DNA of 64,000 bases from Syncephalis fuscata S228 (GCA_025786725.1 JAHLTZ010000024.1:1-64000); one strand, 5' to 3'; shown: positions 7,365-41,912, counted from the stretch's first letter. A program made the numbers and translations. Notes: generated by a model not told the origin, from the sequence alone.

Positions 7365-7856
7365 AACTAATTGGTACACTTTTGATTTGTGCGTTTTTGA
7401 GCATTTTTGGCAAATCCGGTAATGGTCCCCCGTTACAGCTTTTTCAATAAATCGGATATTTTTCACCAGTGTCTAACTCCACCAATAATGCAGCTGGCAA
7501 TGTGTAATAACATCCGCTATGACTGCATAGGCTTGGAGCATTGACACATAGACATTACGCAGATTTGAAGCATTTGGGAATGTTCTAGGAATAAATAGAA
7601 TTTAACAAAAATAATTTAAATTACATTCTATTTCTAGAACATTCCCAAATGCTTCAAACCTGCATAATGTCTATGTGTCAATGCTCCAAGCCTATGCAGT
7701 CATAGCGGATGTTATTACACATTGCCAGCTGCATTATTGGTGGAGTTAGACACTGGTGAAAAATACCGATTTATTGAAAAAGCTGTAACGGGGGACCATT
7801 ACCGGATTTGCCAAAAATGCTCAAAAACGCACAAATCAAAAGTGTACCAATTAGTT
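7365..7856. repeat. Palindromic core copy 1 (~220-bp arms, 45-nt loop 7589-7633)
   Basis: AACTAATTGGTACAC...CATTTGGGAATGTTCTAG, then the loop, then CTAGAACATTCCCAAATG...GTGTACCAATTAGTT. Confidence 0.95.
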
Positions 7857-10142
7857 GGCTATTTAATAAATAGTTAATTACACATTGCCAGCATCGATCC
7901 ACATAGCCATAACTGGCCGTTAATGGCTGCTGCCAATTTGCTAACTATATTGGTTAACAAACATTATTGTTAATACACTATTAGCTAACAAGCACGCTAA
8001 TAGCTATATTACAGATAGTTACAGCATGTACAATAGCACAATGATATGCACCGATAAACTGCTGGCTACATACGTTATGGACTGCGCGGCATTGGTGTGT
8101 ATTGACTGCCTTATTTGTATTTATGGTGAGTGTATTGAACACTGCCAACGCAATTAGTAGGCCGTGTAGCCATGTAGCATGCTCACCGCCTATCATACAT
8201 CTATTGAAATCATTAATGACATACTGGTAATGCCAATGAGTCGCGATATATCATACAGTTAGTAGCGATTGTTGTCTTTGATAATTAAAGCGATTTATAA
8301 TAATAAAATCTACTTATAATTATTTTAGTTGCACGTGTTTCGCTTGATATTAGCTATGAACATCATGTAGATATCTGTTTATTTATAGTCACGATTTCGT
8401 ATTAGCACTTCACCATTAACTCACAATAGCCATGAATATTGTAGGTGTATTATTCGTTATCTTTAATATACAATTCATCGCAAAAATGCAATATTTCTAC
8501 TTTCAATGACTATGGTCATAGCAAAATGCCATGATTTTATTTATAATATCTTGAAATGCCGATAAAGCACTAGTTTACAAATCAAACGTAAATTGCTGTG
8601 TTAATGCTATGGCAGTATGTAGCTGTATTAAAAAATGATTCTAGTGCAATTAGATTGTAGATTTTAATGTCGATTAAATTTAAGAGCGGTGTTAATGCTT
8701 TGGTTATACACAGTGTTATGTAAAATGAAGCAAACTGTATGATATTTGCACAAGCATACTTATGACATATATGTAGCTATTGATAAACTAAAGTGAGATT
8801 GTGCTAGGTATTGCTGCAATGGCTATGCTGATAGGCTAATAAATGTGCATAAATAGCAGTTTACGTAAATATCATCAACATAAACATAATCAAATTTACG
8901 ATTTTAAAATTTCTAATATTAAAAACGAGACTTGGTCTAAAGTAAATCCAAAGCATTATACAGTACTAAAACATGCATAATACCAGGTTAATCTGCATAA
9001 AACCGATTTATAGTGGCAGTCTATGACATAGATATACATATAATTTAGATTTTTGTTAACAAACATTTACGCAAACTGCATTTTTGACCAACATTTGTTG
9101 CAAAAATCGTTGTTCTATAAGTCATACCAAACGATGCAGCTAAGCACGGAGAATTTGAATCCGTCAATCGTTTTGCTATCTTTTAAGTATGTAGGCTGTG
9201 GATGGCATAAAACCGCTATTTATGCACATTTATTAGCCTATCAGCATAGCCATTGCAGCAATACCTAGCACAATCTCACTTTAGTTTATCAATAGCTACA
9301 TATATGTCATAAGTATGCTTGTGCAAATATCATACAGTTTGCTTCATTTTACATAACACTGTGTATAACCAAAGCTTAACACCGTTCTTAAATTCAATTG
9401 ACATTAAAATCTACAATCTAATTGCACTAGAATCATTTTTTAATACAGCTACATACTGCCATAGCATTAACACAGCAATTTACGTTTGATTTGTAAACTA
9501 GTGCTTTATCGGCATTTCAAGTTATTATAAATAAAATCATGGCATTTTGCTATGGCCGTATTGGTATCATTTTAACATTATAATCATATTAATATAATAG
9601 TGTGGCTAAATAATAATGCCACATGTAATTGGCCACAAGAAGAAGACATACCAGATATCAGCACTAACTGCTAACAAACAAGTAGCTATTACAAGCATAT
9701 AAAAATAAATATTTGTTAGTTGTGAATGCATGAGCAGCTATATAAACTGATACGCTGCTTTAATGATAAAGCACTGCAAAGTATTCAAGCTCTATTACCG
9801 GCTGTTTATTATAAAATAATAGCTTTATTTAATGTCAATAAAGTGATAAGTCTATGCTTTGCTCTATTTCTTTTTAGTTTCATGCAAGTTAGTTTATTAT
9901 AGTTAAAACATAATGATTAATGATCAATAAGTTTACAATCAAATTAATATTAACCAACCAACACTTTACGTTTTGAGCGTTAAACGAGTATTAGTAAACA
10001 TTAAAGGCTGTCGTTTACAAGATAAAGTCAAGATGATATGTTATTTAATTATCTACACTATGATTTTTAAATCAAATTAATAGCAATACATATATATATA
10101 GTTTAATAAATGCATTTATTATTCCTTATAAGCGCAACTAGT

Positions 10143-11513
10143 TTAGAATAATAGTTTGAATGGATAGCCTCTATTCTTGACTCGGAACAATCGAAGTAGC
10201 AATGAGTAGATAATGACTAGAAGAACCACCCAAACTAGATTAACGACACTTTGCAGCGTAGTATCTTTCATATTGGGAACTCGTGTTACTAATGATACGG
10301 TGGCAAAAGCACAGCCAGCATCTGATAAATGCGTGCATTAGTTGTCAATTATATTTTATTGTTATCAAGAATTACTTACATAACAGAGCGACAATTTGTG
10401 TTTCGGCTACATATTGTTGTTGGAATCCAGATGCAATATATTCTGGATTCTGAGCATTACCGCCATGATAAGGTGGCATACGAATTTGATTCCACATAAA
10501 GCCAGACATCAAAATCAACAAAAATACCTATATATATATATATATATATGTATATATGAATATACGGATATGGTCAGAGATATTCTATTATTCATTATAT
10601 TAAATATGTACCAGTGAAAAGGCACTCCAGATACGTGGATTGGATAGAGCCGCCCATACATAGCTAGAGGCTAAATGTAAAGCGATAAATGTAGCAATAA
10701 CAATACCGGCAGACATGGCATGTTTGCTCCAGTCAATGGGTCTATATAATGTCATCTAAAACAAATCAATAATAAGCAAACAAGTATATATTTAGGTATT
10801 TTATTATAGAAAACTACCTCTATGCCCATATTATACTTGATAAAGTCAGCAACATCTTCAGCAGTCAAGCCACTATAATTAAATGGTTAGATGTATTAAT
10901 AATGCTGTATTTGTTATATTTATTATATTGCTTACCGTCGACCAAAGTCATAAACGGCTGGGTCTGCCTTTGTGGCCTCGGGTCCAAGGGTGGGATAAAA
11001 GAGAAGCGCTGCTGGTGCTGCATTGATATTATACTATTGTCATTGTTTAATAAATATATGATATCAACGAATTATATTTATCAATCTATTACTCACCTTG
11101 CCAAATGTATGTCGACCATCAGCAAAATCTACATGAATGAAATAGAGCGGCTTTGGTGATCCCATCTTTTTCCAACTGGAAGCAACCAACTGATATTCTG
11201 GTTCAAACGACTAATAACAACAACAACAACATTGCATATTAACAAATAATAACCATATAAGTCTATCTACATACATGCATGGCTCGCAGGCAAAAGCGTT
11301 TGATCGCACAGAGAACACGACAAACGCCGCATAGTCGTGGCCTTCTTCAATAAACTTTGGAAATGTCTTATCGTTTAGCATAATAACATTGTCTGGTTTG
11401 CTATCGGCCAACGCCTGCATTTCCTCGGTTAATGAGGCAAGTACATGGCCTTGCCAGCAGGTCACCAGTAGCAGTAGCAACGAAGTGTATAGATGTTGTC
11501 GAGAGAACCACAT
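10143..11513 (-). CDS. Oligosaccharyltransferase gamma subunit (OST3/OST6, MAGT1/TUSC3 family)
   Basis: Signal peptide, thioredoxin-like CEPC, hydrophobic C-terminal half, terminus LFRVKNRGYPFKLLF*. Confidence 0.85.
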
Positions 11514-12709
11514 CGTTGTAGTATACGAGCACTATTGTATACCGTGGTGATATTCGTGGTATAATCTGTGAATGATGCCCCCTAATAACGGCCGCTATCA
11601 ACGGTAGGATACGTAGTAGCAGCAGTAATAGTAATAATAATAGGTAGTGGTGGTAGTGCTGGTGCAATAAGGGAACCAACAAAAGAGATAGAAAGAAAGA
11701 GCGCGCGAGAACAAGAGCAAGTTGAGGGGAGAGGTGGCTGTGGTGGCAGCTATTACTACGCTTCTACTGCTTTGAGATGACGCGAATCAGTGTGATTTCG
11801 CTAATGGTTGGCCAACAGTATCGGCGTTTATTATCCAATCGAAATAGCCACGACAAGTTCGGTGTATTAAAGAGCCAGTGGTTACCAATAAGCGGCACCT
11901 TTTCTTCTAATGGCAACGAAATGATAATTGATTAGTAAATGGATACTCCTAGGATATTTACGCTATTACTAACCAAGACCAAGGTTTCCAATGTGTCTTA
12001 TAGACGCTGTTTTAACAACTGTGTGGTATATAATCAAACTTTAAATGATTTATAAAAATTTACACCTTTGGTTTCAACAACACACGTTCATATTATTACC
12101 ATCACTGTTACAACCATTGCTATTATTACTATTATAACTGTCTTCTTTCTCCTACGCCTGTCTTGTTTTGTAATTCCTTGTGTGTGTGTGTGTGGTTGCT
12201 CACGACGGCGATATATACACGAGCACTACAAGTTTTATTCGTTAAAAAGTTTCATCTTTGTAGCATTTGAAGTAGCCGTGTTTCTATTGGTTTTTTACGG
12301 TTACGACTATCTTTGTTGTTACTATCCTTGTTATCGCTATTGGATGAGTGCATATATCCACTCTACTATTCTATTTCCAAGTCACTATATCTGGTAGGTG
12401 TGCGCGCCATGTTATCTGTGAAACAGCGGATAGATGAGGCACGATTGCGCCTCTTCTATTACATTGTGCATTTTCACAAGAATGAATTAACTATAGCTAT
12501 GCAACTAGATCTCAACGTATTAACCAACCAGCGGAATTGAAGCTACATTGACACTATTATATTGCTATTGTTGCAATTACAGGCTAGTGCCAACCCTCTT
12601 TGTACTATTCTATTGCAAACAGTGATCTTGATTGTCTACACAACAACAACCGACGCTTTATCAACTATAACTATACGCCGCCGGCTTCTGCACGGCATAA
12701 ATTTGCGAT

Positions 12710-15700
12710 ATGGAACCGTTTTTCCGTCGCAAGCGTAACAAAGGAGGGAGTCAAAGTAGTATAACACCTCCGGTTACTGCTATATCGATATCAGCACCTA
12801 CTGCTTCTCCAACCGGTAGTAATAATGGTGAGTCAGGTAGCCAGATATCAGCTCCTCCTATGTCACCACCGCATCGATCAGGGTCTTGGGCTGATGCACG
12901 TGCATCCTCGTTATCGGCATCGTCTACTGTATCGAGTCGCATGTCAAATCATTCTGATGGATCGGTTAATCTAGGCAGTGAGCGTCCTAGTGAACAAGCA
13001 GTTCTTGATGAAATGCTCGAACAGATTATGGTAATATAGATGCATGCTTTATATGCTGTTGTTGTTACTTACGCGACAATTACATGTATCTAGGAATCTA
13101 TGGGGCTTGGTGAAGCACAAAGAAAGCAAATGCGAGATATGCCATTTCAAAACAAGTTAAAGCTTGTCCAGTCCAGTCAATTTAAACAGATTAGCGCGGT
13201 AAGCAGAAATTTATTTGGTTTAGCTGCTTATTGATGTTTAATTATATCTGTGTATCTGCATGTTTATATAATCGTATATTTATTATTAATAGGATAAGGC
13301 CAACCGTAATGGTAGTAAAGATCGTTCAACGCCTGAATATTACGTAAAAAAGATGGCCGAAACTGAAGTGAGAAATATTCCATTAAAGACATGGACTGCA
13401 TTGCGTGTTTCATTGACCACTCAACCTATTGCGTAAGTAAATAGCATTAACTAATGAAATATAACTAATGTATTTAATGATATTATCATTACCATTCTAT
13501 TAGATGGGTGCGTCAATTTATCGATCTACGTGGTACTCAACTTGTATGGGATGCGTTAGGTGTCATTAATAGTCGACAGCATCGGTAAGTAGTATTGGTT
13601 AATTAATCAAATAGACTTGTAATCAAAAATGGTACTAAATCGCTATTTATTAGACGTGAAAGTGATATCAATATAGAAATTGAAATTGTTAAATGTCTTA
13701 AATCATTACTTAATAATAAGGTAAGTAACAATATATTGCTAATAATATGGAATTAATAATTAATGACTAATGATTAATGTATTTGTTTATTTAGTGGGGT
13801 ACACGAGATGCACTTAATAACGAAGAATCAATCTACAATCTCGCCTTGTCTTTGGACAGTCCAAGCATTATTACGCGTCGACTAGTCTCAGAAGTGTTGA
13901 CGTTTATTTGTTACTGTGACATTCCACATGGACATGCGCTAGTAGTGCGTGCTATGGACAAATTACAATCAACACGACAAAGTAAACATCGCTTTGGGTC
14001 TTGGATATCTGTACTTGAACAGACTATTGAAGGCCGTGGCCGTATGGGCAGTATGGTCGGAGCCAGTGATGAATATCGTCGATTAGGATCAGATCGAGAA
14101 TTACTTGAATATGTGGTATGTAATTAATTCATATTATACTATATAGTACTATATATATATGTTGCTATTAATTAACCGTATTAAATGCTTTAATATACTA
14201 TATAGTTATCTAATATTATTCTAGTCAATGCCATTGTCGGTGTTTGTGACGAAGTTGATCTACGCCAACATTACCGCAACCAATTGAACACCTGTGGACT
14301 GGCCCGATTACTGCGCACAATTAAGGAATTTGCCAATGACTTGATTCTATTGCAGTTGAACAAATATCAACGCGAAGCCGAAGATGATCAGTCAGAATTA
14401 ATGGACTTTAACCACGCATTTTCTCTACCTGATATGAATAGTCCGGCTGAAGTTATTGAAACATTACTTAAATCAGTTGAAGGTACAAAAGCCCACGACT
14501 ATTTACTTTCTGCGTTGCAGCATTTATTGCTGTTACGTGATGATGACGACACACGTGTACAGTATTTCCATCTGATTGATCGTCTAATTACACAAATTGT
14601 ACTCGATCGTCGGGGAGTGAATGAAGAGTTCTCTACACATATGGCACTTCAGTAAAGTCGGTTATTGCCGGTTTTAATAATGAAGAAAGTTACAGCGAAT
14701 GCAGCGTGACTTTGTAACTGTTAAAAAGAAACTTGATCAAATTCAACGAAGAAATGCCGAATTAGAACAACAAGTCAAATTAGGCGCAGGTAAGATGGTG
14801 GAGATAGGCGTGAATACAATCCAATGTACTTACGACCATGTAATTAGATGGCATGGTTAGTCAGTTGCAGGAGCGTAATAAATCGTTAGAGGATTTGTTA
14901 CGTATGTCACGTACAACTGTCAAATCATTACAGGATCAAGTAACACAATTACGTACACAGTATCATGCCAAATTGTGTGAACAGGATAAACAGCTACAAC
15001 AGCTATATGAAGCATTGAAGCAAGAAGCAGAAGAGAATACACACCTAGTCAATGCTCGTGAAAGTCTAATTGTAGAAAATCGTTTAATGAAGCAAATGTT
15101 ATGGCCTGATAACGATAAGGCAGTTCCTGGTAAAACCAGTGTTAAAGGCGCGCCAGACATTACACATAATGCTTTATTAAAAGAGATCGAGAAATTGAAA
15201 CAAGATCGTGGCATGATATGGAATGAGGTAAGTAGATGGCTACATTTATCATGAATTATATAGCTAATTAATCACTTGTATTATTAGAGTAATCGACCAC
15301 GAATTACTAGTTCAAGTGTAGATACAGTTGCGATGCGCAACAAAAAGGCATTTATTGAAAATCTTCGACCAACAAGTGTATCGACTACATTCGGTAAAGA
15401 GAATATGGCTGGACCACAATCAGCCTCATCGCCTGTAGCATCACCGATAACATCGCCAGTTGGTATTAGTGGTGGCGGTTCACGACTGTCATCAGGCAGT
15501 TTAGATCGCCGTTCACGTAGAAAATTCAGTCTGGCCGGTACACCTTCCTTGGCTGGATCAATTGATAAGTTGGAGTCACTACAGGCAGTCATCACCGAGT
15601 TTGATAATAACAATTTGGACTCATCTACATATGCACCGGATGGCATTACTTCGCCGAATCGACGTGATAGCAGTGGTAGTATGAAGCCATTACCAGTACC

Positions 15701-18549
15701 GCCATCGAAACGACAAACCATTTCGTTTACAGATATTAAACAAACGCAAATGTCATCTTCTAAGCCATTGCGTGAAGCATTGATGGAATCAATTCGTAAA
15801 CAACGCAAGGAAGAGGATGAATCTGACGCTGATGGTATTGAAGAGGAGAAGGATGAATCGGCTATGGTATCCAGTCCAACTGATATGGCACCAAGCGATA
15901 CTAGCTTACCAGCAGATAAGCCAAGTGCAGCAAGTACTACATTTGCTGCCATTCCTCCACCTCCGCCCCCACCTCCACCTCCACCACCACCAGCGCCACC
16001 GCTACCTGGAGCGACGTCATCAGTAGCTGGATCACTTCAATCGGCTATTAATAATTTGAAATCGACGTCAGATGCTACAGCTGCCATTCCACCGCCACCT
16101 CCACCACCACCTCCACCACCACCACTTCCAGGTGCATCTGGACCGCCCCCTCCACCGCCGCCGCCCCTCCACCTCCGCCACCTGGATCATTGGCTCCGCC
16201 ACCGCCACCACCGCCACCAGGTCCAGTGGCTAATAACAGCGCTGGTGCACCAGTTGCACCTATTATATCATCAGCTGGTAAGATCTATGATACAGTCTTT
16301 ATTAACACTATTAATACATCATTTACAATGATCATAGCATCGGTACCTGTCAAAGAGTCCAAGTATATGGCGCGAGTCAAGCTTAAGCCGCTTCAATGGG
16401 ATAAATTGGCAGGCCATGCCTTTAAGGAGACCATTTGGGCTCGTGAAATAGAGCGACGCGAATTAGACGAGGCATTATTTGGCAAGGTATTTGGCGAAGA
16501 AGGCTTATTTGACCAGATAGAAGATATGTTTGGTGCAAGGATATTTGAACCTAAACCAAAACGTAAGTAATTAGACATTTAAGTTGATTATACGTGTATT
16601 AATACTTGTAATATTACTATAGAAAAACCAAAGACAGAAGAAGTCAAGCTAATATCTATATTAGACTCTAAACGCAGTCAGAATATCAGTAAGCTATTGT
16701 TATAATAGTTATAATTTATATCGTTAATCATTGGTATTAGATATTGTATTGAGTCGACTTAAACAATATTCAAACGATGAAATTAGAAAGGCCATTTTAT
16801 CAGTAGAACATGAAATGTTAACTGAGCCGCTTCTTCGTCAATTGGCTACATTTACCCCAACTGCTGAAGAGGTAATTAATATAAAATAGCCAATCTTACA
16901 TTATACTTATTACCCTTATTATTATAGCGTGTAGCACTTGCTAAATACACGGACGATCCAAGTGTGTTGGCACGGGCTGATACATTTATGATTGAGGTAA
17001 GTAATATATTAATGTTAGTAATACATTTAAATTAACCATCAATTTAGATTATGAAAATTGATCGATATGAACAACGATTACAAGCCATGAATTTCCGTAG
17101 AACATTTGAAGAGCGATTTATTGACATTGATAACGTAAGTACATAACATTATGATGATATTTAATAATATTAATAATATTATATACTATATATACTATAA
17201 TATAGGCGGTAGATTCAATTCAGCGTGCTTCAGCTGAATTAGAAAAGAGTCGAACATTCCCCAAAATACTTGAAGTCATTCTTATGATGGGTAATTACAT
17301 GAACGGTCAAGGATTCCGTGGAAATGCTCAAGCCATTAAAATCCACAGCATCAATCGAGTAAGTAAAAATGACTATTAATTACCAATAACACTAATGTCA
17401 TATCAATTATTAGTTGATCGACACAAAAGCAGAGGACGGTACCACAACACTACTTCACTTTTTGGCTACAACACTGGAAAAGAAGTTCCCCGATCTATTA
17501 TCATTTATTGATGAGCTTGCCTCTGTGGCCAGTGCACGTCAAGGTAAGTATAGCTGTAGAATGAACAAATTAAAACTGTTATATTTACGCATCATGGCTA
17601 TAGTAGCTTTACCGAGCTCAATCTTGAATACAACGAAATGAACGTTCGTATTACCGAACTCGTCCACCGAACTAGAGACACATTACGACAAAAATAAGAA
17701 CAGGTTGGCAGATGATGCCTTTGGTAGTATTATGAAGATATCCTTTTTAAATACTTGTATAGTATAATACTATTAAATAAGTAACCTTGACTATTATGTT
17801 TACGAGTTTAGCGAGATGGCCAAGGCACGGTTTGAAGCACTAGATCAACGCTACCAAGAGATGAAAGAGATCTACGAACGTGTTGTCGTACTTTATGGTG
17901 AAGATGCCAAGACTATGTCGCCGCATGAGTTCTTTACCATTTTCCATACATTCTTACTTTCATTTAAGGTACGAGTAGATTAAATAAGTGTATATATCTA
18001 TTAACATTGATAACAATAGCGTGTCCAACGTGACAACCAAGATAAATCGGAAAGAGATGAAAGAATGGAACGCCGCAAGAAGGCCGAGGAAGAACGAGCA
18101 CAAAAAATGGCTCAACGAGCCCAAGAAAAAGATGCAAAAGATGGTAAATACACGACTATAAAGTCTACACTATTAATATGAACACCAATACTAATTGCTG
18201 TTTACTAGATGCTGGAGACGACAAAGGTGTTATGGATTCATTGCTTGAATCATTGCGTAAAGGCACCGATTCTGAAGCATCTAAACGAAAGCGAACCCCT
18301 CGAGGCAATGCAGCCAATACTAAAGGCCAAGACATGCTACGAGTTGGTAATAATGATGCTGCATCTCGCCGTATCTCTGTATCAGTACGTACGCGCGAAC
18401 TACTTAAAGAAGTTAGTATGAGTGGATTTGATGATCCAGATGCGGCTGCTTCTGCCACTTCCATAAGAGGATCGGCCCGTCGACGCATGGAACGACGTAA
18501 AATATCTGGCAGTGGCAATGGCCTTCAAAATGATAATAATGACGATTAA
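12710..18549 (+). CDS. Diaphanous-related formin (GBD/FH3, coiled coil, FH1, FH2, DAD), Bni1/SepA-like
   Basis: LRVSLTTQPI.WVRQF, GRGRMGSMVGAS, polyproline FH1, KLKPLQWDKL, ILMMGNYMNG, DTKAEDGTTTLLHFL, DAD GVMDSLLESLR; several apparent single-base frameshifts. Confidence 0.95.
17738..17803 (+). other. U12-type (minor spliceosome) AT-AC intron in the formin FH2 region
   Basis: 5' end ATATCCTTT, branch-like AACCTTGAC, 3' end TTTAC. Removal gives DAFGSIMK|EFSEMAKARFEAL; the unspliced frame contains TAA. Confidence 0.88.
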
Positions 18550-18704
18550 GCCTGGTAGTACTGTACTTTGACTCCCACATCTGTCCCCAAAGCACAATTT
18601 GTTCCAATCAGAGTCATGCCATTGTGATGCACAACATAGTTATATTACTTTCTATTAAAATACTATTAATAAATTAATTTAAATAAATAATGTAACATAC
18701 CATT

Positions 18705-19065
18705 TAATTTTTGAAACATTGAGGTTAATCATTGTTGTTGTTGGCCATGTGTAGAAAGATTGATCGAATATTAATAGAAGTCATATGATTGCAATTCCAT
18801 ATCATTCATTAAACAGCCACTTCCTCTATAGCCAATCTGACTAAATAAATGGCATTGAACAATTAATATTATAAATGACAATAGATATATTAAAACAATA
18901 ATAAAGATAACTAACTAATTACATTATTGTACTGATAATCACACATGAATCAATTAATGTTAAATGCAATATTATACATGTTATAGTAATAAATAAGTGT
19001 TTAATTGTATTTAAAAGTGAAGGAATGAAATGGATAAATAGAAATGTGAAGTCAAAGTACAACAA
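18705..19065. repeat. Dispersed repeat fragment; inverted homolog at ~53045-53560
   Basis: GGCCATGTGTAGAAAGATTGATCGAATATTAATAGAAGT and TATAGCCAATCTGACTAAATAAATG match the reverse complement of the 53.05-53.56 kb region. Confidence 0.8.
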
Positions 19066-19230
19066 CTCCAATCTAATTAGTATTAATAATAATAGTTAAA
19101 GCCATTGATGTATCTTTCTCTTTACCTTTTGTTTTATTGTGAGTGTGTTTTGTTGTTACGGTGACGGACATACTACACGTTCCATGATTAACATATTTAA
19201 ATACTATTATTAAGTACTAGTATTATTACA

Positions 19231-20348: not shown

Positions 20349-20707
20349 TTTATATGCATATTTATGCATAATAGCACCTTCTTTTGTGTAGATATATGCA
20401 TACAGATCTATATATATTTACAAGTGTGTATGTATGTATGTGTGTGTGTGTGTGTCGATTTCATATAAATTATTATTGCCATGATGGTTATTGTCGGTTT
20501 TCTCTTTCTTTTTACGTCCGGCTATTGTTTTTTGGATATTATCACACACCGATCTTGCTGAACTACTACTGAGATCACCGTAGTAGTTGCAGTAGTTGTA
20601 ATAGTAGCCGTGAGTAGCTTTCTTTTTCGCTTTTAATCGTATTGCCGGCAAATCGACAACCAGTATCTATTCTACATTGCTTTTAGTAGTATTGGCACTT
20701 GATCATC

Positions 20708-29268: not shown

Positions 29269-29409
29269 TTAGTTCTATTCTCACTTTATTTGTACTTGCT
29301 TTTAGTAAAATATGTTGTATACTATTATAATTCTTTAAGAATATATTCAAATTAAGTTACATTTGGTATAGTCTATTCAATATAATTAAATCAGCAATAA
29401 TTAAAATAA

Positions 29410-30318
29410 TTTGTCTTTTATTGATAATTTATTAGTAACATAACTATAATTGGGGGTCAAATGACTATTTTTAATAACATTTGCGTAATTGAACCAAATA
29501 TTTAATCTATTGAACATGATGGTGGGTGGTGAGTGGCATCAAAGTCTAAAATACCCATCATCATAGATTCATTATCCAGTATGCATATATTCAATACACA
29601 TATATCCTATATCCATATGTATCATTTCTATTCCATTCCACACTAATATATATCATTCTGTGATATACTAGACACATTTTATTGTTTATATGCTTCAATA
29701 TACTTTACTCATTCCTCTCATTGCACTATATGCACTCTAACTTCAACAGCGTTTTATATGCTTTCTCATTGTACATTCATTATTTTATATATCATTCTAT
29801 ACTCGCCTAACTTTCCTCTATCTAAAACTGGTTTTGTTTTTATTCTAGCTTTATTATTAATAAATGTCGGCTAATTCCGCTCATTGATCATGCATATATG
29901 CTCAATAACTTCAACACTGCTAATCGTCACTCTGTATTGTATATTCTTTATATTGTATATTACTTTATTGTATAGTACATATGTGCTATTTATTACAACT
30001 ACCGTTTGTTTTTAGTCTTATTTTAATAAACATTGGTTTATTTACTCATTCGTTGATTAAACTATATGTACTTAAAACATATAACAATAGAACACGTCTA
30101 GTGTATCATAGAATACTATATCGTAGCGTGAATAGAATGGAATTATATAGATGGATAGGTGATATATACATACTGGATAATAAATCTACAATGATGAGTA
30201 TTTGATGATTAATGTCACTCACCACTCACCATCATGTTTAATAGATTGAATTTTATTAAATTTAGTCATTTGACCTTTAAATCATATTAAATTACTAATA
30301 AACTGTTTATAAAAACAA
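29410..30318. mobile_element. MITE-like element with ~170-bp imperfect TIRs (mirror copy ~34795-35700)
   Basis: Left end GGTCAAATGACTA...AATCTATTGAACATGATGGTGGGTGGTGAGTGGCAT...TTATCCAGTATG; right end CATACTGGATAA...ATGTCACTCACCACTCACCATCATGTTTAATAGATT...TAGTCATTTGACC. Confidence 0.7.
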
Positions 30319-30714
30319 ACTGTGCGTTCCAGTAATAAAAACTGACAACGATTTACTATCAATAATCCTGCTGTGAGGCTACATCCAATTATCTTGGTAT
30401 TCTGGTACCGCGAAGCCGAACTCTAAATATACAAATGTCCTTTCTGTCGGCGTATATCTTAAATAATGCAGCATTCTCATTTTCATGCAAATATTTGTCT
30501 TTTCATTATTAAAACGTTATAACTAGCAGCAATTGTAGTGCTATTACCCCTGTTTATAACAACGTCAAACAGTACAAAACACGTTTTGTCTAATTATAGA
30601 TATCGGTACTCTAGCCGATATCACTCCCGAAACACCATGTTCTACTAAAACAATGTATTTATTCTCTTGTCATTACCCCCGCTAACTTGTTGCTCTTCTC
30701 CTTTTCTTACAATA

Positions 30715-32465
30715 ATGAATCATACAACTAAGAAATCAGCAAAGACGGAAAAGCCGGTAAATATAGCGCCGGCTCGACCAAATACAAAGCGAGTTACGCG
30801 TGTGGTCTTCTTTACGCTACTCTTGGATATCTTGGCGTTCACCATTATTCTACCGCTACTACCAAGATTAATTGATTATTATCGTGCTCAAGAAGAGCAT
30901 CGTGAGGTACATGAATTCATCTATAAGATATAGTAGCATTTAATTGATTAATCTGTTGATTGTTAATAGGATACATTGCTTGGTCAGACACTTTTATTCA
31001 TCGGTCGGTTTCGTCATTGGACTGGTGCTTCATTATCGCGTCATGATCCACCAATGCCATCAATGGCTACAGTGCGTGGACCTAGTGGTTCGCCGCTTGA
31101 TACTGTGCTATTAGGTGGTGTACTTGGATCGCTTTTTTCCTTCCTGCAGTTTATAGCATCACCGGTCATTGGACGACTATCAGATCGATGGGGACGCCGT
31201 AAAACACTCATCTATACAATGGTAAGTAGTACTTTGCTTTTAGTAATAATAAGTAGTAATTTATCTACATATAATTTATAAGATTGGCAATTGGGCTTCA
31301 TGTTTGCTATGGGCATTTGCTGGTAATTTCACCATTTTTCTACTGGCCCGCATTGTTGGTGGCTTATCAGAAGGCAATGTTCAGTTAGCCGTGGCCATTA
31401 TCACTGATGTTACTGATAGAGCTACTCGATCCCGTGGACTGGTAAGCTATTGACAGCTCATTAGTTAATTATTAACAATATTATTGTCATATTATTTTAT
31501 TTATATAGACTATGGTAGGCATTGCATTTGCTATAGGATTTACAATAGGCCCGGCTATGGGTGCCTACTTTGCTTCATGGAATCTATATCAAACATTTCC
31601 GGCATTAGCCAACTGGGGATTGAATCCATATTCAGGTGCGGCGCTATTTGCTCTACTACTTATCACTATCGAGACGGCAGCCATTCTATTATGGCTTGAT
31701 GAGACAGCTCAGTATCGCGAAAAAGTCAAAGAAGTAGCTGTCCATCAAGAAAACACTGCACTAGTCAATGCACGCCGTAACAATCTTACTATTCTTAACC
31801 GTATCCACTTTCTTCATCTATTTTTATTCTCGGGTATGGAATATACGCTTACTTTCCTTACTCACGATGTACACGGATTTACACCAATGCAAAATGGCAA
31901 ACTGCTGGGTGTTGTAGGTATTATATCAGCTGCAGTACAAGGTGGCTACGTACGCCGGTCGGCCTATCGTATTGGTGAGAAGCGTATTGTACTGCAGGGT
32001 GTTATCGCCTGTGCACTAGCTTTATTGGCCGTAGCACAATCAGCCTACACCGGAAAACAAAGCTGGCTATGGCTATCGACAATATTTCTAGCCTTTACTT
32101 CAGCGACAGTCGTCAATTGTCTTACCTCGCTTGCTTCGATGCAGTGTGACGACGAGGCCGAGTCCACCATGGCCAGCCACCGCAATAATACTAATGCTAA
32201 TGCCAATAATAAACGGTACGTATCCTCGCCTCTGGCCGCATCTTCATCCCCAACGGATACAATTACTCGCGGCGAGGCCCTTGGTCATTTCCGTTCGCTA
32301 GGTCAGTTAGGTCGCGCAGCTGGTCCTCTACTAGCTTGCACACTTTATTGGTTAGCCGGTCCGGTTACTTGCTACACAAGTGGTGCCGTCGGCGTTTTAT
32401 TAATCGCCACCATTATCTACGTAGTTGCACCGGATCGTCCTTTAAGTGCACGAAAACAAAACTAA
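30715..32465 (+). CDS. MFS transporter, MFSD10/TETRAN-like (tetracycline-efflux-like)
   Basis: VFFTLLLDILAFTIILPLLP, GSLFSFLQFIASPVIGRLSDRWGRR (motif A), GGLSEGNVQLAVAIITDVT, FLFSGMEYTLTFL, RSLGQLGRAAGP. Confidence 0.92.
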
Positions 32466-33498
32466 TAATTTATTGTGCAGTAACAGTATTAACAATAACA
32501 GTACCATGATACTTGAAACGTCACATTAAACCTTTTATTGGGGCAATTTAGACAAATAAACCTTTCATATGACCTCGTATCACGCTTTCAACATTATATG
32601 ACATCATAACCGAGCACACTGCATACACATGGCATCACGTGCCACTTTCAAGGATCATCTCCTAGTTTCTTAGTATCGATGTACATTAAATTGACCGCGG
32701 CCTTTGCTTTAATCCGTAATACAATCTCTTTCTCATTTCTTTCTTTTCTATTTCGCTTTATTTCGTTACTTCGTTCTCGCTTTCTTTCTTTTTTTATTTA
32801 CCGCCGGCTTCTTGGCCTGGGCGTGTGTGCGTGTGCGCGTGTACAACTTTACGTATCTAAAGTGCCGTCTCCTTTCCGTACTTCTACTCTACTCTCCTTT
32901 GTCTCTCACTGGCTCCTCTCTTTCGCTTAACAACAACATCCAACACTTGGCAATTGTCGCAGTTACACTGTTATTTGAGTATTATCAATCCCCAGTGCCT
33001 TTATCTCCTACTGATTGATCGGCTGGCTACTGTCTGATATATCTCACATATAGTGACGCGTGCTGTACCATTCTACTCGATTGTATCTACAATTCTTTGA
33101 TAAATTAGAGTATTGATTAGTGATACCATTCGCTATGTCGGCTGCTGATAAACAATAGCCTAACACTTTTCTACGCTCGCCACACAATTCTGTGTAGGCG
33201 GCTCATTGTGAATCATCCACACACCACACGCACATAACATCATCTGCCAATCCGCCTTGTTTGTCACACACTAGTAGTACATGACACAGTCCACGATTTT
33301 CGAATCAACACACCAATATTTTTTCTATATTACTACTATTACCACCATTACCCATCGAATAAGAAATATCTTTAACTATTTCAATTTGATTCTTTGGTGA
33401 TATTTAATCATTCGATTATCTAGGCTTGTCATATCTGTTTACTGACACAACTAACCATTACTCATACTATTATTGGTGTGACTGCTCCGTTAACTACC

Positions 33499-34323
33499 AT
33501 GGCCTCAACAACATTTCTATTGATGCCAGCATTCCTGTTGATCGGCTGTATGTTGGCACCGTTTATATTGGTCTTACTATTCGCCTGTTTATTTACATTG
33601 CTATTTATTCGTATATTATTATTGCATCATCGGCGTAAGATGACTCCACTGGCCGTAGAGCAGCGTGACGTTATCGATACCAAACTAAATGCACCAATTC
33701 ATTCATCTATATCATTATTAGATCAAATGCGGTCTCATTGGACCTACCGGATAATTGCCCATTTTAAACTAACTGTGATGACGGGGTTACAAATCGCCAG
33801 TGGTCTGGGCGCATTATGGCGCGCTGGAGGTCTATCTAAGATCCGACGTGCGCGAACAACTGTTACACTCAATTCCCCCCGCATCGCTGCAGATAGCAGT
33901 AACAAACAGCATGATATGAAGAGAAATAGCCATAGAAATGGCTCTACTAGCGATAAAGATAGCCATAATAATGATGACAGTATTACTGGTCAATATTTAA
34001 CTGACGTGCCAGACACTAATCATCAGCTATCAAATAAATCAACTTCTGCACTATCATTACAACGTAAATCACCATTAAAGCGCAGCAACTTCATTGCAAA
34101 TTCGCAGTCGACTTTAATGGGCGTTGCATTTTTACGACGACCCACAACCACCATGATTAAAGAGCAGCGTATTCTCCCAACTGCATTATCTCCAAAACCA
34201 TCTATACTATCACAGCGCAGTTTTAAAGGTGCCCATGCTTCATGGCTTACTACTCCTATTCCCTCAAAAGTAAGCAATGGACCCCGATATAGACTGTATG
34301 CTGAAGTGGACTCTGTCCAATAG
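33499..34323 (+). CDS. Hypothetical protein with hydrophobic N-terminus and low-complexity basic tail
   Basis: Intronless ORF of ~274 aa from the ATG at 33499; N-terminal hydrophobic stretch of ~40 aa; no family recognised. Confidence 0.6.
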   Translation: MASTTFLLMPAFLLIGCMLAPFILVLLFACLFTLLFIRILLLHHRRKMTPLAVEQRDVIDTKLNAPIHSSISLLDQMRSHWTYRIIAHFKLTVMTGLQIASGLGALWRAGGLSKIRRARTTVTLNSPRIAADSSNKQHDMKRNSHRNGSTSDKDSHNNDDSITGQYLTDVPDTNHQLSNKSTSALSLQRKSPLKRSNFIANSQSTLMGVAFLRRPTTTMIKEQRILPTALSPKPSILSQRSFKGAHASWLTTPIPSKVSNGPRYRLYAEVDSVQ

Positions 34324-34610
34324 TATCTATATATTTTGTTATGCAGCATCATTATATTTTATTTTGTTTTCAATATAAATTCAAATTTATCGCTAATTAT
34401 ACCGCTGATCGGCTATTGATAATGCATAGCCAATCACTAGACTAAATTGCTAGATCTATTCTAGTTAATATTGAAATGTACTCCTATCATTTGGCATTAT
34501 ATATTTGCAATGTTAAAGCAAATATTGTATTGCTGAAAAATTAACAAATAAACTATTTAAATAAAATAACATTTATTTATAAATAGCTGTTGTTTTATAA
34601 TATTAATATT
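34268..34610 (+). repeat. Direct repeat, copy 1 (copy 2 at ~44643-45218, with ~230 bp of extra sequence)
   Basis: CCCCGATATAGACTGTAT(G/A)CTGAAGTGGACTCTGTCCAATAG... near-identical over ~220 bp, followed by a more diverged block starting TTTGCAATGTTAAAGCAAA. Confidence 0.9.
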
Positions 34611-35842
34611 GCTGCTCATATTCATGCCACTATACTTTAATTTAAACAAAAATACTTTTTAATAATCAAGTTTAATACATACAAACAAGATAAATAACAA
34701 ACGGTATTAAATCACATAAGACATACTATCTATTACATCTATCATGGTAGTGCCATTCTATTCTACTCAGACTAATGAAGTTGATGACAAATAGTTGTTT
34801 ATAAACAGTTTATTAGTAATTTAATATGATTTAAAGGTCAAATGACTAAATTTAATAAAATTCAATCTATTAAACATGATGGTGAGTGGTGAGTGACATT
34901 AATCATCAAATACTCATCATTGTAGATTTATTATCCAGTATGTATATATCACCTATCCATCTATATAATTCCATTCTATTCACGCTACGATATAGTATTC
35001 TATGATACACTAGACGTGTTCTATTGTTATATGTTTTAAGTACATATAGTTTAATCAACGAATGAGTAAATAAACCAATGTTTATTAAAATAAGACTAAA
35101 AACAAACGGTAGTTGTAATAAATAGCACATATGTACTATACAATAAAGTAATATACAATATAAAGAATATACAATACAGAGTGACGATTAGCAGTGTTGA
35201 AGTTATTGAGCATATATGCATGATCAATGAGCGGAATTAGCCGACATTTATTAATAATAAAGCTAGAATAAAAACAAAACCAGTTTTAGATAGAGGAAAG
35301 TTAGGCGAGTATAGAATGATATATAAAATGATGAATGTACAATGAGAAAGCATATAAAACGCTGTTGAAGTTAGAGTGCATATAGTGCAATGAGAGGAAT
35401 GAGTAAAGTATATTGAAGCATATAAACAATAAAATGTGTCTAGTATATCACAGAATGATATATATTAGTGTGGAATGGAATAGAAATGATACATATGGAT
35501 ATAGGATATATGTGTATTGAATATATGCATACTGGATAATGAATCTATGATGATGGGTATTTTAGACTTTGATGCCACTCACCACCCACCATCATGTTCA
35601 ATAGATTAAATATTTGGTTCAATTACGCAAATGTTATTAAAAATAGTCATTTGACCCCCAATTATAGTTATGTTACTAATAAATTATCAATAAAAGACAA
35701 ATTATTTTAATTATTGCTGATTTAATTATATTGAATAGACTATACCAAATGTAACTTAATTTGAATATATTCTTAAAGAATTATAATAGTATACAACATA
35801 TTTTACTAAAAGCAAGTACAAATAAAGTGAGAATAGAACTAA

Positions 35843-37544
35843 TTAAAGCGAGGTGACTATTTGTTTGTTAGTATTTGGGTATAGATATTGAAATGGTACT
35901 TACTTTTTTGGGCGCGTTTAGTTTTCTTCTTTTCTTCAAATGATTCAAAAGAGCGTAAGCGTTTTACGCCTTTTGGAATCAATAAGGCAACATTAAACGT
36001 TGCCGAGACCGCAGCCGATACATTTGCAGCCAACTTATCGGATGATGATGCTGCAACTGGATGGCTGGACGTTGATACTACAGCTGACTGACTGTATGTC
36101 GTTAGTGCTATAGTTGGGATGGTGGATGTTGAAGCTGTAGGAGTAGCAACAGTACCAGCAGCCACATCTTGAGCGCTATCTTCACTGCAAGATGCTTCCT
36201 TAAACCACTCACTGTTTAAGGCTTCATCGATAGTACAGCGCTTGGTACTATCAATGGTAAGCAGCCCTTGAAGCAAATGTTTGGCTATAATAAAATTAGT
36301 ATTGTCTGCTATTTAATGTATTGTTACTTACCGTCTTGGCTTAAGTCTGGCCGATTAACATTTGCCAGATCAAGCTTATCACTGAATACATCAGTAATAT
36401 ACGCGATATGGCTGCCGTTATTGTACGGCAATTGCTCTAAAAATATTAATTAACTATTACTATTATTTTATATTTGAATTATATACTTACTTGTTAACAA
36501 GTAAAACAAAGCAATACCTAAGCTCCAAACATCTGCTTCCTTGCTATAGCCATCCTGAACAAAAGCAAATGTCTTAATGGCCTCTTGACATTCATTGCTA
36601 TACCCAGTTATTTGATTTAATACATCGTTTTTTAGACCGGTACGAAGCAGGATCTCTGGCGCCATGTATCCTCGTGTACCACAGCATTTGGTCAGCCGTG
36701 GTCCTTTGGGCGCAATTGTACATGCTAGACCAAAGTCTGCAAGCGCAATCCTTGGATTAGCGCCGTCATTTATGACCAGTACATTAGGCAACTAAATAGC
36801 GTTAGTGTTTGTTATTACAAATAGCTATAAATAAAATACTTACTTTAATATCTAATATGCAATATAAAATGCAAATTATTATTAGCTAAATGTGTTATAA
36901 TTATTGTATTACTTACCACAATGCACGATATTATTGGCGTGCATATGCTACTTCACTGTTAATACCAATATATTTATATAATATTATTATAACTTACTTG
37001 CACAGCACAGAGCATCTGCCAGAAAATGCTCTTGCAGATATCTTCTGAAAGTGGGTGGTGCTTTTGCACGTATTTATGCAAATCGCCACCCCACGCATAC
37101 TCCAAAAATATATAGGTATATTTTTTGGTTTCAACCGCTTCAAGCAGTCGAACAATGTTTGCGTGGCCTTGAAGGACTTCCAATACGTGCTTTTCTCGAA
37201 TATAATCGTCAGAAGCCTCTAAAAAATAACTTTTTTTGCTAGCTTTCTTCAGCATCATTTTAGCTGCTACAGGCTTGCGTGAACTAAGAGCGGTAGCCAA
37301 ATAGACGCTACCAAAACCGCCTCTGTATTATAGTAGTAATAATCAATTAGCTATGCATGGCAGCTTATACATATAACTTACGATCCAATTCGGCGGTTTG
37401 TTACATGATATTTGGCAGCGATAAGCTACATATGAGTACGCGCATTAAACTTCAATAAACATATACTACTTATACAACACTTACCTTCTCGTAATCGGAG
37501 CTGTTGTCATCTGTATTTCTTTGTACGGCGGAAATAGACGCCAT
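35843..37544 (-). CDS. Mek1/Chk2-like kinase (copy 2; ORF-track exon translations identical to copy 1)
   Basis: Mirror ORFs 36974-37300, 36468-36791 and 35857-36276 translate identically to copy 1. Confidence 0.88.
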
Positions 37545-40500
37545 TGCTTTTTAAAAGATAGTGTAGTAAAAATACAATAAACAAGCTCGGATAAATGAAG
37601 ATATACTGACAGTAAGTTGGAAGAAACACAATTGGTATTTTATTTTTATATTTGCGCATTGCACACTTTATTCATTGTCTTATGGGCTAGCCATACTATG
37701 CCATATTATCACAAAAGCATCATTAGCTCTACACAATTTACTGCGGTATGGTCTTTAGCTGATTGCTTTGCACTGTCATATAACAATTGTTTTTGCACTT
37801 GCTACTGCTTTCAATAACAATTTATTTTAAAACGGCACATGCACTTTAAACACTCCGGTAGAACCTCCGATACCGACATATCGGGCTTAGTCAAATAAAG
37901 ACCGACAAAGGACTTGTGACGGCGTGTATCTTGGTCATAGCGCTTTGCCATTAGAACGTATAATGCTGCTTTAGGTATAGTGTTGGTACTTGCTTTTGCT
38001 CAGAAGCTATATTGCCCCAATTTCTTATCGTCGTTATCGTCCGGCTACGGGTCTACTGGCAAAACGGTCTAATTAAGCCATCAATGACGCAATTTTGTGT
38101 TGGTTTCAGATCTTATCAATTGCCCACTTTACGATTGTTATCGAACGATAGTTATGTTTATTTTATTAGTATAGAAATATAAACAATAAACAAATATATT
38201 AATTATGCACATTGTCATATTATTTGTACAGTTAGTTATAAAAGTATAACAAGTTGCATTTGTCATACTACAAAACAGGTAAATTCAGGTGTGCGGAAAA
38301 AAGCGTAAAGATGATTCCAAAGCTTTGGAATGACTAATGCAACAAACTAAATGGGTATGGAAGGCATAACAAAAAGAACAGTCTAATTGGCTGGATTAGC
38401 TTGGATCCTGATAACAACCAGCACCGTGCACTTAATAACGCACAGTGAGTATGGATATGTCCAGAACAAATCAATTATTTATGACTATTTGCCGATGTAG
38501 CTGTGGTTAGTATGAGCGAATATCAGTATCTATCCATTAGGCTTTATCAACTGAATTATGCAACGTGAATGCTTTTCACCAGTTTCGATTTTTTGCCACA
38601 TAAAATGACTTTGCCACTTTCCCCGAACCAAGCATTGCGTTTTTGTCTTTTCATACCATTGCCTATTGCTCAGTACACTTTTTACTTGTTAGACTTTAGT
38701 AATCACAAGATTGCTGCTAATTACTGTTTTGCATACCTAAGCTAAGTAAACGAATCTGTGTGGGCAGTACTGTTGTGCTTTTTGGCTGTGTGATTTGGTA
38801 GCATTCTTAGACACATAGTCGGCTACAACTATGTAATACTGTGGCATAATTCCAATATGCTACATAAGGTGCTTCAATACTGTATGGTTAATTAGCTATA
38901 CTGATTAGTGAATATGGGTGTTTACTATGTGCTTGCCTGTGGTAATTACATTGGTATAGTTATTTGGTTGTCGGTGCAACATGAAGGCTGTGCTTGAAGA
39001 TATTGTTGAGCCACTGCTTAATACTAATTTTAATACTTGGTATTTGATACTTGATATTTGATATTTTGATGGTACAGATAGAGTGTTGCTTAGGCAGCTG
39101 CTGTTAGTTTTATGCTGTATATATGTGCTAAAGATTGTATATAAATGACGTAAACAGTAGCCTTTATAATTAAGCAGCTATGAAGTAGCAGTGGTAATAG
39201 CCTATTCTGCATATTTATGAAGCTGTTAGGAGAAACAATGTTGATTTAGTACGACCGCCGGTCCAACGCTATTGCGGTTTTTATATTTATGCAGAGTAAC
39301 TATTCCAAATTGCTTGTCTTGGCGTAGTTATGCAGCAGGCATCATTGCCATAATTAATTTACATATATCGTTTACTTATACCACTTTTAATAGATTATAT
39401 TCAAGAACTGTTTATATTTTGCAAGATTAGGATTGTAATACACAATTTAGCACTTGGTTTGTAGTAGCATATTTTTATTATTTATGTATTCTTTTTTATT
39501 TGCTAAATAAAAGTAGCTTTTTATTTTCACAAATAGTATCATAGCACAACTAGCTTTAATATAATTACATTTACATTGTTTAATAACATTTGTGCAATTA
39601 AACTACAAATTTGTTCTATTGGATATGGAACTAAGTGGTGAATTTTAATAATGGCCAAACTATTGAATTATATTGTAATTTAAAGGTCAAATGACTTTTA
39701 TTTTTAATGCGTTTATTCATTTACTGTTAATCTGTTCTATGATGTACCAACATGTTGGGTAGATTGACTTTTATTATTTCACACTCCATTTATTAATAAA
39801 TTAAGCTCACGTCTTTATAAATATTGGCTGACAGAATTCACATCTCACAATCTACGTCACTACATTTTCTTTCTTTTTCTTCACACTTGATAGTATACAT
39901 CCATTGCATATACTTGTACACTCCATATATGATATATAGATAGTACCAGTATTTGATTGACTAATAGTCAAGTACAAACACCTTCTACACTATGTACTTG
40001 CATTACTTTTTTATAATCTGACCTTCATTACTCCGATCATTGGTATTGGCAGCTTTATTGACACGGTAAGTGCATTTCTGGCTTGTTTTATGCTATGCTG
40101 CATATATACTGTGAAACATCGTTGTATGTTTTGCTTATACTATTGATCGCAATTATAACTCGTCTGGCAATAACTCTGCAATCCCAGCAATGATTGTACG
40201 ATCTGCTACTGTCGAGATTGCAAAAACTGTTGTTAGTACAATCTGCAGTGGCGATTAGCAAAAAAAAAGAGTATGTAATGATCTTGGTAACCTATAGTCA
40301 TCACAGTCATTGTGTATTGCTACTGTTGTATGTGCAAAGTTGTCAGCATGACGGTAGTGCTGGCTATGCATTGGTAGATTTCTAGTGATAGAATGATATA
40401 GGTAAATAAAGGATATATACATACTGGATAATAAATATACAATAATGCGTATTTTAGTCACAAATGCCATTGACTGCTCAGTTTCATGTTTAATACAATA

Positions 40501-41406
40501 AATGTTAGTTTAAATGTAGTCATTTGACCACCAAATTGCAATATAATTAAACGATTTGATCATTAACATTTAGCACCATCCGACCATCTTCAATAGAACA
40601 AATATGTAGTTTATTTACATGAATGCTGTTAATTTCAGTCATTTGGCTCTTAAATAATAGCATTTTTAATAAACTGCTTAATATTAGTGCAATAGACTTA
40701 ACACAAATAATATAATCAAATAAAGCATTGATATTGCTATTGACATGGTTAGCGCGGGTGTAGCTATATAGAATGTAAGTGTTTGTAATATGATAACCAT
40801 ATGCTACAATTTAGGTAGCTGAATGACATGCAAAAGCTACTGAATATTGTATTGCATTACTATGGTAATAGTGCTATCTATTTAAAGTATGCTAAATAGT
40901 AAATTGTTTATAAAAAAGTGGCCGTATTGCTAATACCTGTAATCAAGACAGATATGGTATGATGACAGGAATCAACATTGCGATATAAACAGCACACTAA
41001 GCAGTCAATATATATATACATACACATTCAACAATACACGAAAGTAGCGCCAGTGGCAATGTCCATTAGCGAATACAAGCATGGTAGCTGCTGTTCGCTA
41101 TAGCTGTAGAGTTGTCGGCAGCATTAGCTTATATATGTGGCAATCAATGCCGATACATGTCAGTAAGATGCAGATATTTAAGCAATATACAGCAATATAC
41201 AGTTGTTGATGCGTATGTTAGTGCGCACTTGGCACCAACGACTGATACTATTACTATAGCTATGCAATAGCTAGCAGTATCGTTGCTGTTGATTGTAGTC
41301 AAGATACGTGCAGTGTTGTAATGTATGGTGGTGTGCTACCAATGCTAGTAATAAGTTGTTTATGACATTAGCAACACTAGCTGGGCAACATAAACAAGTG
41401 ATGGCT

Positions 41407-41912
41407 AACTAATTGGTACACTTTTCGATTTGTGTGTTTTTGAGCATTTTTGGCAAATCTGGTAATGGTCCCCCGTTACAGCTTTTTCAATAAATCGGGT
41501 ATTTTTCACCAGTGTCTAACTCCACCAATAATGCAGCTGGCAATGTGTAATAACATCCGCTATGACTGCATAGGCTTGGAGCATTGACACATAGACATTA
41601 CGCAGATTTGAAGCATTTGGGAATGTGCTAGAAACTAGAATGTAATTTAAATGTTATTTTTGTGTGATAATATTTCTATTTATATCGCTAGAACATTCCC
41701 AAATGCTTCAAATCTGCGTAATGTCTATGTGTCAATGCTCCAAGCCTATGCAGTCATAGCGGATGTTATTACACATTGCCAGCTGCATTATTGGTGGAGT
41801 TAGACACTGGTGAAAAATACCCGATTTATTGAAAAAGCTGTAACGGGGGACCATTACCAGATTTGCCAAAAATGCTCAAAAACACACAAATCAAAAAGTG
41901 TACCAATTAGTT
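41407..41912. repeat. Palindromic core copy 3 (56-nt loop 41632-41687), B flank on the left and A flank on the right
   Basis: Left flank ...CATAAACAAGTGATGGCT|AACTAATTGG is B type; right flank CCAATTAGTT|GGCTATTTAATAAATAG is A type. Confidence 0.95.

Follow-up and report, generated by a model that had tools for sequence, protein, structure and literature searches.

The sequence considered here, hereafter the window, comprises the first 64 kb of contig C157 (443,508 bp) in the assembly of Syncephalis fuscata S228, and it carries three copies of a palindromic core of ~500 bp, two of which coincide with the ends of an inverted gene block. We compared the window with itself and searched for its repeats in the whole S. 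fuscata assembly (29.4 Mb, 371 contigs), which is the scope of all genome-wide searches reported below. The cores lie at 7365-7856 (core 1), 23205-23703 (core 2) and 41407-41912 (core 3), and match one another in both orientations at 93-100% identity. Each has two arms of ~225 bp separated by an asymmetric loop of 45-56 nt; in core 1 the arms span ~7365-7588 and ~7634-7856 around a 45-nt loop (7589-7633), and the loops of cores 2 and 3 lie at about 23429-23483 and at 41632-41687, respectively. Folded as single-stranded DNA, the core forms a near-perfect 225-bp hairpin (-283 kcal/mol, z = -42). A six-way alignment of the half-cores in both orientations showed that the flanking sequence changes at the identical base in all six, namely the outer end of the arm (AACTAATTGG...), beyond which one of two flank types is found: type A, reading ...TTATTAAATAGCC, or type b, reading ...AACAAGTGATGG(T/C)T. 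Core 1 joins A to A (A|A), core 2 joins b to b (b|b), and core 3 joins b to A (b|A). The loop of core 1 is inverted with respect to those of cores 2 and 3. An earlier note, made from the sequence alone, had described the three cores, their common switch point and the three junction types, and all of these were reproduced in the self-comparison, the genome search and the six-way alignment.

The window begins with unique genes (1-5131), which include a truncated kinesin, Rpp40, and a WD40 gene. The contig starts inside the kinesin gene (N-terminal exon at 463-684, minus strand), 5.1 kb from the first palindrome, and the unique 5.1 kb at the contig start overlaps no other contig of the assembly. 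The A|A junction is the centre of a 4957-bp palindrome (P1, 5132-10088) with flank copies A1 (5132-7364, minus strand) and A2 (7857-10088, plus strand) as its arms; the distal end of A1 meets unique sequence at 5131/5132, and the distal end of A2 lies ~50 bp from the 3' end of OST3. The b|b junction is the centre of a 1759-bp palindrome (P2, 22578-24336), with b1 (22578-23204, minus strand) and b2 (23704-24336, plus strand) as arms. Both palindromes are centred on the core and retain its asymmetric loop of 45-55 nt. Flank b2 continues into B2 (24337-30313, plus strand), and core 2, b2 and B2 form the left arm (23205-30313) of a 7.1-kb inverted repeat, the right arm of which (34798-41912) consists of B3 (34798-40775, minus strand), b3 (40776-41406, minus strand) and core 3. 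Flank A3 (41913-44131, plus strand) follows; its homology stops 17 bp short of the ends of A1 and A2, which share those 17 bp. The long flank B is a composite: every one of the three copies has its first 627 bp (b), and two have its other 6 kb. The unit found in all three copies is A (2.2 kb), core, and b (0.63 kb), 3.35 kb in total. The earlier note had proposed a basic unit A-core-B of ~9.3 kb, of which the A-core-b part is retained here for every copy and the long B part for two only.

The first two palindromes enclose a block (10089-22577) with OST3 (about 10137-11500, minus strand), formin (about 12710-18510, plus strand), TIP41 (about 19261-20387, plus strand), and eRF1 (20580-22383, plus strand; supported by spliced RNA contigs that end at 22383). 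Between the arms of the 7.1-kb inverted repeat lies a single-copy spacer (30314-34797, plus strand) containing an MFS transporter gene (about 30775-32477, plus strand) and an orphan open reading frame (ORF; 33424-34320, plus strand), and RabGAP starts at about 46.6 kb. Translated from 31512-32462, the MFS protein matches the S. fuscata protein at NCBI with 100% identity. Using MFS orthologues to reach the corresponding loci, we compared this order by tblastx with that of four relatives. The order is RabGAP (-), orphan (-), MFS (+), OST3 (-), formin (+), TIP41 (+) in S. plumigaleata (969-kb contig); MFS (+), OST3 (-), formin (+) both in S. pseudoplumigaleata and in a related metagenome contig; and formin (-), OST3 (+), MFS (+), BSD, RabGAP (+) in Thamnocephalis. 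OST3 and MFS are 130-370 bp apart in all four relatives, and the direction of formin-OST3 relative to RabGAP is constant. The MFS, orphan, and RabGAP genes of S. fuscata, together with the next gene, are collinear with Thamnocephalis. The comparison shows the block OST3-formin-TIP41-eRF1 to be reversed relative to all four relatives, with its eRF1 end facing MFS; this present adjacency of eRF1 to the MFS side delimits the inverted segment as exactly OST3 to eRF1. Loci of Piptocephalis do not conserve synteny and are hence uninformative on gene order.

The ends of the inverted block are the positions of cores 1 and 2. On either side of the block, A2 and b1 turn their distal ends toward it, as an inversion of the segment arm-b1-block-A2-arm predicts. 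In the self-comparison, the core was the only sequence common to the two breakpoint intervals; identity between cores 1 and 2 is 93-96% across their full length and 98-99% in the arms, and this homology is available in inverted register. The gene block is single-copy in the genome and not duplicated, and the relatives lack all of these repeats at their orthologous loci.

We interpret these observations as a lineage-specific inversion that arose by exchange within the palindromic cores, through either homologous recombination or break-and-rejoin, and that was followed by homogenisation of the arms. We assign this reading a probability of about 0.6; the location of the exchange in the cores, the sequence in which the events occurred and the gene conversion are inferred. 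A foldback-type DNA repeat of S. fuscata, with long inverted repeats and a low copy number, would have the core at its centre, and three A-core-b units would have entered three adjacent intergenic spacers in this lineage alone. Even units in the same direction would still offer each other, by virtue of the palindromic core, ~225 bp of 98-99% identity in inverted register. Units one and two would then have exchanged at their cores, whether by crossing over or because breaks at these hairpin-prone sites were rejoined. The OST3-formin-TIP41-eRF1 block would thereby be inverted, with A joined to A and b to b, which would create the 5-kb and 1.8-kb palindromes, and the third unit would keep the parental b-core-A form. 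Later gene conversion would keep each piece similar to its current palindrome or inverted-repeat partner.

Undoing the exchange on paper gives the order left genes, A1'-core-b1, eRF1 to OST3, A2'-core-b2-B, MFS, orphan, B'-b3'-core-A3, RabGAP, which is the ancestral order plus three like insertions, each with one A end and one b/B end. Because every interrupted adjacency of the ancestral order has one A and one b/B end, a single exchange would explain all three junction types; and because the palindromic core provides inverted homology between direct units, one reciprocal exchange would explain the inversion, A|A, and b|b together. The earlier note had regarded the core as a cleavage or exchange site that reshuffles its flanks. 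Its role as an exchange site agrees with the block being inverted relative to four relatives and with A|A and b|b as the expected products of a reciprocal exchange between two A-core-b units, but a dedicated cleavage activity is not required, as general recombination or break repair at a palindrome would be enough. On this reading, the event would belong to an already known type, the repeat-driven inversion, and would represent no new recombination system; the locus reveals no new enzyme or element class.

Identities among the copies (counted from substitutions only) bear on what would have followed the proposed exchange. A1 and A2 are 99.82% identical, and either differs from A3 by 2.0% substitutions (97.97% identity). 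For the b flanks, identity is 98.56% between b1 and b2, 98.41% between b1 and b3, and 99.84% between b2 and b3, and B2 and B3 are 99.98% identical (one substitution and one indel in 5977 bp). Every piece is closest to its current palindrome or inverted-repeat partner. The A and b groupings conflict, with A1 and A2 standing apart from A3 and b1 standing apart from b2 and b3. Four transitions and three indel columns separate the two arms of the 5-kb palindrome, and at each of these sites one arm has the A3 state; between the arms of the 1.76-kb palindrome the difference is 1.4%. Given these differences between arms, neither palindrome looks like a fold-back read artefact. Taken together, the identities suggest that the palindrome arms were afterwards kept alike by gene conversion.

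A direct duplication that brackets the third unit (left copy at 34268-34610, plus strand; right copy at 44643-45217) gives a further measure. Its copies are 98% identical over 235 bp and then 81% identical over 112 bp, and over the best part they have already diverged by 1.7%, so that the near-identity of the 7-kb arms more likely reflects maintenance by conversion than simply a recent origin. The right copy carries a ~225-bp insertion, and the duplication spans the last 17 codons of the orphan ORF. No further copy of it was found in the genome. The bracketing duplication looks like a long target duplication from the insertion of a 10-kb segment.

Beyond the window, the genome search recovered about 8 cores in 29 Mb, with A attached in 7 of them, whereas b has three occurrences, all on this contig. 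The flanks are accordingly not random, and the possibility allowed for in the earlier note that the core is an ordinary miniature inverted-repeat transposable element (MITE) with random flanks did not survive this genome-wide tabulation. The core with A is also found at two sites on contig C24 and on contig C351, at ~80% (core) and 70-75% (A) identity, and these copies have A on both sides of the core, with one arm short. At C24:54849-56289, two diverged cores lie 63 bp apart within a 1.45-kb palindrome that is followed by an A-like arm. Contig C351 begins inside a core, and its first 12.6 kb (C351:1-12610) is about 98% identical to C24:55399-68000; on this identity, C351 is a haplotig or a recent segmental duplication of the second C24 site. 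A 5408-bp palindrome at C35:521776-527183 has arms that are 97.7% alike and a central ~330 bp that is 68-70% similar to the core; it contains no ORF of at least 80 aa and no target-site duplication. By these comparisons, multi-kilobase palindromes with related centres are a recurrent feature of the S. fuscata genome. With regard to coding content, none of the ORFs in the core or its A and b flanks matched a Pfam domain. Target-site duplications were absent around the 5-kb, 1.8-kb and C35 palindromes, around the C24 copies and around each of the three units, and no terminal inverted repeats were found at the unit ends. A foldback- or MITE-type DNA transposon was considered for the unit and rejected, given the lack of target-site duplications and terminal repeats and given that the copies are not numerous and dispersed in unrelated flanks.

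Several observations weigh against the inversion by exchange between cores. After a single reciprocal crossover, the loops of cores 1 and 2 should point the same way; the observed orientations are opposite, so that the model has to add a loop flip or a conversion. The close match of A1 and A2, set beside the 1.4% difference between b1 and b2, calls for gene conversion or for a second unit that was already chimeric. The units lack target-site duplications and terminal inverted repeats, so the model does not account for how three copies arose. The C35 palindrome of ~5.4 kb, with its related centre, raises the possibility that A|A is a normal form of the element and not a recombinant. The comparison of gene order with the relatives does not extend beyond eRF1, and the Logan contigs of close relatives with the last eRF1 exon are ~1 kb long and end before the next gene. 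Connectivity across the cores is taken from the assembly; the public runs comprise one RNA-seq set and PacBio-like DNA runs, none of whose Logan contigs bridges a core, and those of the DNA runs cover the repeats only but do contain a core-to-A junction and a C24-type flank.

Replication could also have produced the arrangement. In this explanation, a broken or stalled fork would turn at the cores, by foldback priming, microhomology-mediated break-induced replication (MMBIR) or a process like origin-dependent inverted-repeat amplification (ODIRA), and a single complex event would both copy A and b-B in inverted form and flip the block, with no more than two older units as its starting point. 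The copies do fall into two age classes, with A1 and A2, b2 and b3, and B2 and B3 differing by at most 0.2% and the other comparisons by 1.5-2%, and the 99.82% identity of A1 and A2 fits one arm being a fresh copy of the other; these two also share 17 bp past the end of A3. Furthermore, the third unit is bracketed by the 345-bp direct duplication, and the palindromes are centred on a short inverted repeat, the core, whose spacer is kept; palindromes centred on short inverted repeats are a known product of foldback priming (PMC10622511, PMC10766183). Tracing the path, however, takes four to six template switches, compared with one crossover plus conversion, and the block is single-copy, unlike the typical inverted duplication and triplication products, with b1 and b2 being 1.4% apart. 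We consider a replicative origin rather unlikely. The same evidence divides the comparison drawn in the earlier note with palindrome formation of the Tetrahymena rDNA type, which fits the core-centred palindromes with their loop kept but not the single-copy genes between the cores or the 1.4% difference between b1 and b2. An inversion by staggered breaks was rejected, as it predicts inverted duplicates at the opposite ends of the inversion and these were not seen. It is also conceivable that an inversion made otherwise happens to have ordinary foldback elements at its breakpoints, A|A and b|b each being a complete one and b|A the odd hybrid. The genome is full of foldback-like repeats, and both the 5408-bp C35 palindrome with its 68-70% related centre and the C24 and C351 copies with A on both sides of the core (one arm short) would be in keeping with this. 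Nevertheless, it would need two independent insertions exactly at both breakpoints, and 98-99% identical centres with unrelated arms would still require an exchange at the core. Considering also that b occurs nowhere else in the genome and that target-site duplications were not found at these elements, we regard ordinary elements at an unrelated inversion as improbable.

An error of assembly would dispense with the inversion altogether. The real genome would then have A-core-b at both sites and the block in its ancestral orientation, with the 15.8 kb between the palindromes flipped by the assembler. The uninverted form would be collinear with Thamnocephalis without any rearrangement, the unique-to-repeat junctions are the same in both arrangements, contigs of the public runs cannot bridge the core, and only 5 kb separate the 5-kb palindrome from the start of the contig. 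On the other hand, the junctions could be told apart with reads of ~1 kb across a 500-bp core, a trivial task in long-read sequencing; the transitions between the arms are real; and the assembly holds no alternative contig. Identity also follows the partners as assembled, and the change falls exactly at the loops. When a hypothetical continuous arm A2-core-b2-B was compared with the third unit, identity fell from about 100% to 98% exactly at the loop, which we take as internal evidence for the assembled arrangement, since a continuous stretch from A2 into b2-B would hardly account for a change at this point. A misassembly thus seems to us an improbable account as well. The least credible explanation, to which we give almost no weight, is that cutting or exchange at the core is the work of a dedicated site-specific system, for example a tyrosine recombinase or a hairpin resolvase resembling protelomerase. 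The switch of flanks at one nucleotide would seem to favour it, but that nucleotide is simply the end of homology between A-type and b-type flanks. A search of six frames of the whole assembly gave no match to the protelomerase catalytic domain (ResT/TelK, PF16684). Six long open frames (540-991 aa) with a tyrosine-recombinase (Phage_integrase) domain do exist on other contigs, inside foldback arrays of their own, but no sequence is shared between these elements and the core, A, or b. The three cores are, moreover, internal to a 443-kb contig, between housekeeping genes, and not at the end of a replicon. Consequently, neither the hairpin-telomere analogy nor the suggestion of a recombinase acting on the core, both raised in the earlier note, found support in the genome.

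Our preferred reading, an inversion by exchange within the cores, has a close precedent in Galileo, a foldback-like element of the P superfamily, copies of which at Drosophila buzzatii inversion breakpoints have exchanged flanks and are chimeric (Delprat et al. 2009, PMC2775673). The exchange in Galileo maps to the middle (loop) part of the element, and breakage of a hairpin or cruciform has been proposed as the trigger (PMC2775673). The S. fuscata locus is similar in that long-inverted-repeat elements with exchanged flanks lie at both breakpoints, and here a parental-type copy is present as well. It differs from Galileo in its host, a zoopagalean, mould-parasitic fungus, and in the repeat itself, which lacks both target-site duplications and a recognisable transposase relative and amounts to only about 8 copies. 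In addition, the recombining S. fuscata units would be direct, with the palindromic centre supplying the inverted homology, and the products would be long perfect palindromes instead of chimeric elements.

Palindromes are also fragile sites in yeast, where hairpin-capped breaks, Mre11-Sae2 processing, foldback priming, and ODIRA have been described (PMC8053094, PMC10622511, PMC10766183). Like the yeast foldback junctions, the new palindromic junctions of S. fuscata have a long, closely spaced inverted repeat at their centre, and the arms of ~225 bp and spacers of 45-56 nt of the core are within the range known to extrude hairpins. The yeast products are duplications, triplications, and dicentric chromosomes, whereas the intervening genes of S. 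fuscata are single-copy and simply inverted. The resemblance to the hairpin telomeres of phage N15 and Borrelia, for which protelomerase resolves telRL, is only formal, as one palindromic site is found with L|R, L|L', and R|R' flanks; a protelomerase domain is lacking in S. fuscata, its sites are internal to a eukaryotic chromosome, and its palindrome is ~10 times the size of a tel site.

The ampliconic palindromes of the human and primate Y chromosome span hundreds of kilobases and undergo arm-to-arm gene conversion. The S. fuscata arms resemble them in being 99.8-99.98% identical while older paralogues are 1.5-2% apart, but here the scale is kilobases and the conversion would be deduced from these identities.

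If the exchange took place as proposed, the locus would be a clean natural example of inversion from a barely studied, early-diverging fungal lineage, with the parental and both recombinant junctions within 37 kb and with polarity provided by four outgroups. It would also illustrate how a palindromic centre lets direct repeats recombine as if they were inverted, turning hybrid units into multi-kilobase perfect palindromes. In genomes of Zoopagomycota, such cores may flag synteny breaks as well as spots in the assembly that are worth checking. A more far-reaching possibility is that the core is a recurrent, still active hotspot of breakage and exchange, that nuclei with both orientations of the 12.5-kb block and of the loops coexist, and that the same process builds the scattered multi-kilobase perfect palindromes of the genome. 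We consider this doubtful at best; were it true, it would amount to a structure-driven, possibly reversible inversion system without a dedicated recombinase.

A number of additional observations were made at the locus and in the genome. The MFS gene alone is in opposite orientation in the S. plumigaleata group relative to S. fuscata and Thamnocephalis, and from the gene order this is a separate small single-gene inversion next to OST3. A flip-flop of the spacer between the 7.1-kb arms was rejected as the cause of this difference, because the orientation of the orphan gene is unchanged. Among the repeat copies (5132-10088, 41913-44131, and 22578-24336), 84% of the differences are transitions (38 of 45 between A1 and A3, and 8 of 9 between b1 and b2). 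Mutation of the kind caused by repeat-induced point mutation (RIP) was considered and rejected, as transitions dominate yet run in both directions and have no clear dinucleotide context. The tyrosine-recombinase ORFs are located at C34:2474-6910, at 365-366 kb on C201, at 44.8 kb on C344, and on C90, C312, and C314. The copies on C34 and C201 share 99.9% identity, with flanking foldback arrays of ~2.4 kb that are repetitive internally; elements of this type may be Crypton/DIRS-like.

Further repeats are nested in the flanks. A2 contains an inverted repeat (8511-8862 and 9210-9560) of a foldback-like family with more than 200 matches in the genome. A foldback MITE-like element of ~840 bp occurs in B2 (29470-30313), at 34798-35641, and at 53593-53850, and dozens of copies at 74-87% identity are found in the genome; its outer terminus coincides exactly with the point where each arm of the 7.1-kb inverted repeat ends on its inner side. 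The long B part consists of a cellular kinase gene together with common small repeats, and a 4.5-kb segment of it has a paralogue of 94-97% identity on contig C35. In B2, the spliced Ser/Thr kinase gene lies at about 27784-29251. In the public RNA-seq set, contigs cover eRF1 and parts of B, and none covers core 2 or b. B2 also includes a highly expressed repeat-family RNA region at about 25000-25400. Within 24512-25400 (mirror copy around 39700-40600), RNA-seq word depth reaches about 2000 at 25000-25199, compared with ~570-1320 over eRF1, and the stretch at 25200-25400 is also high-copy in the DNA runs.

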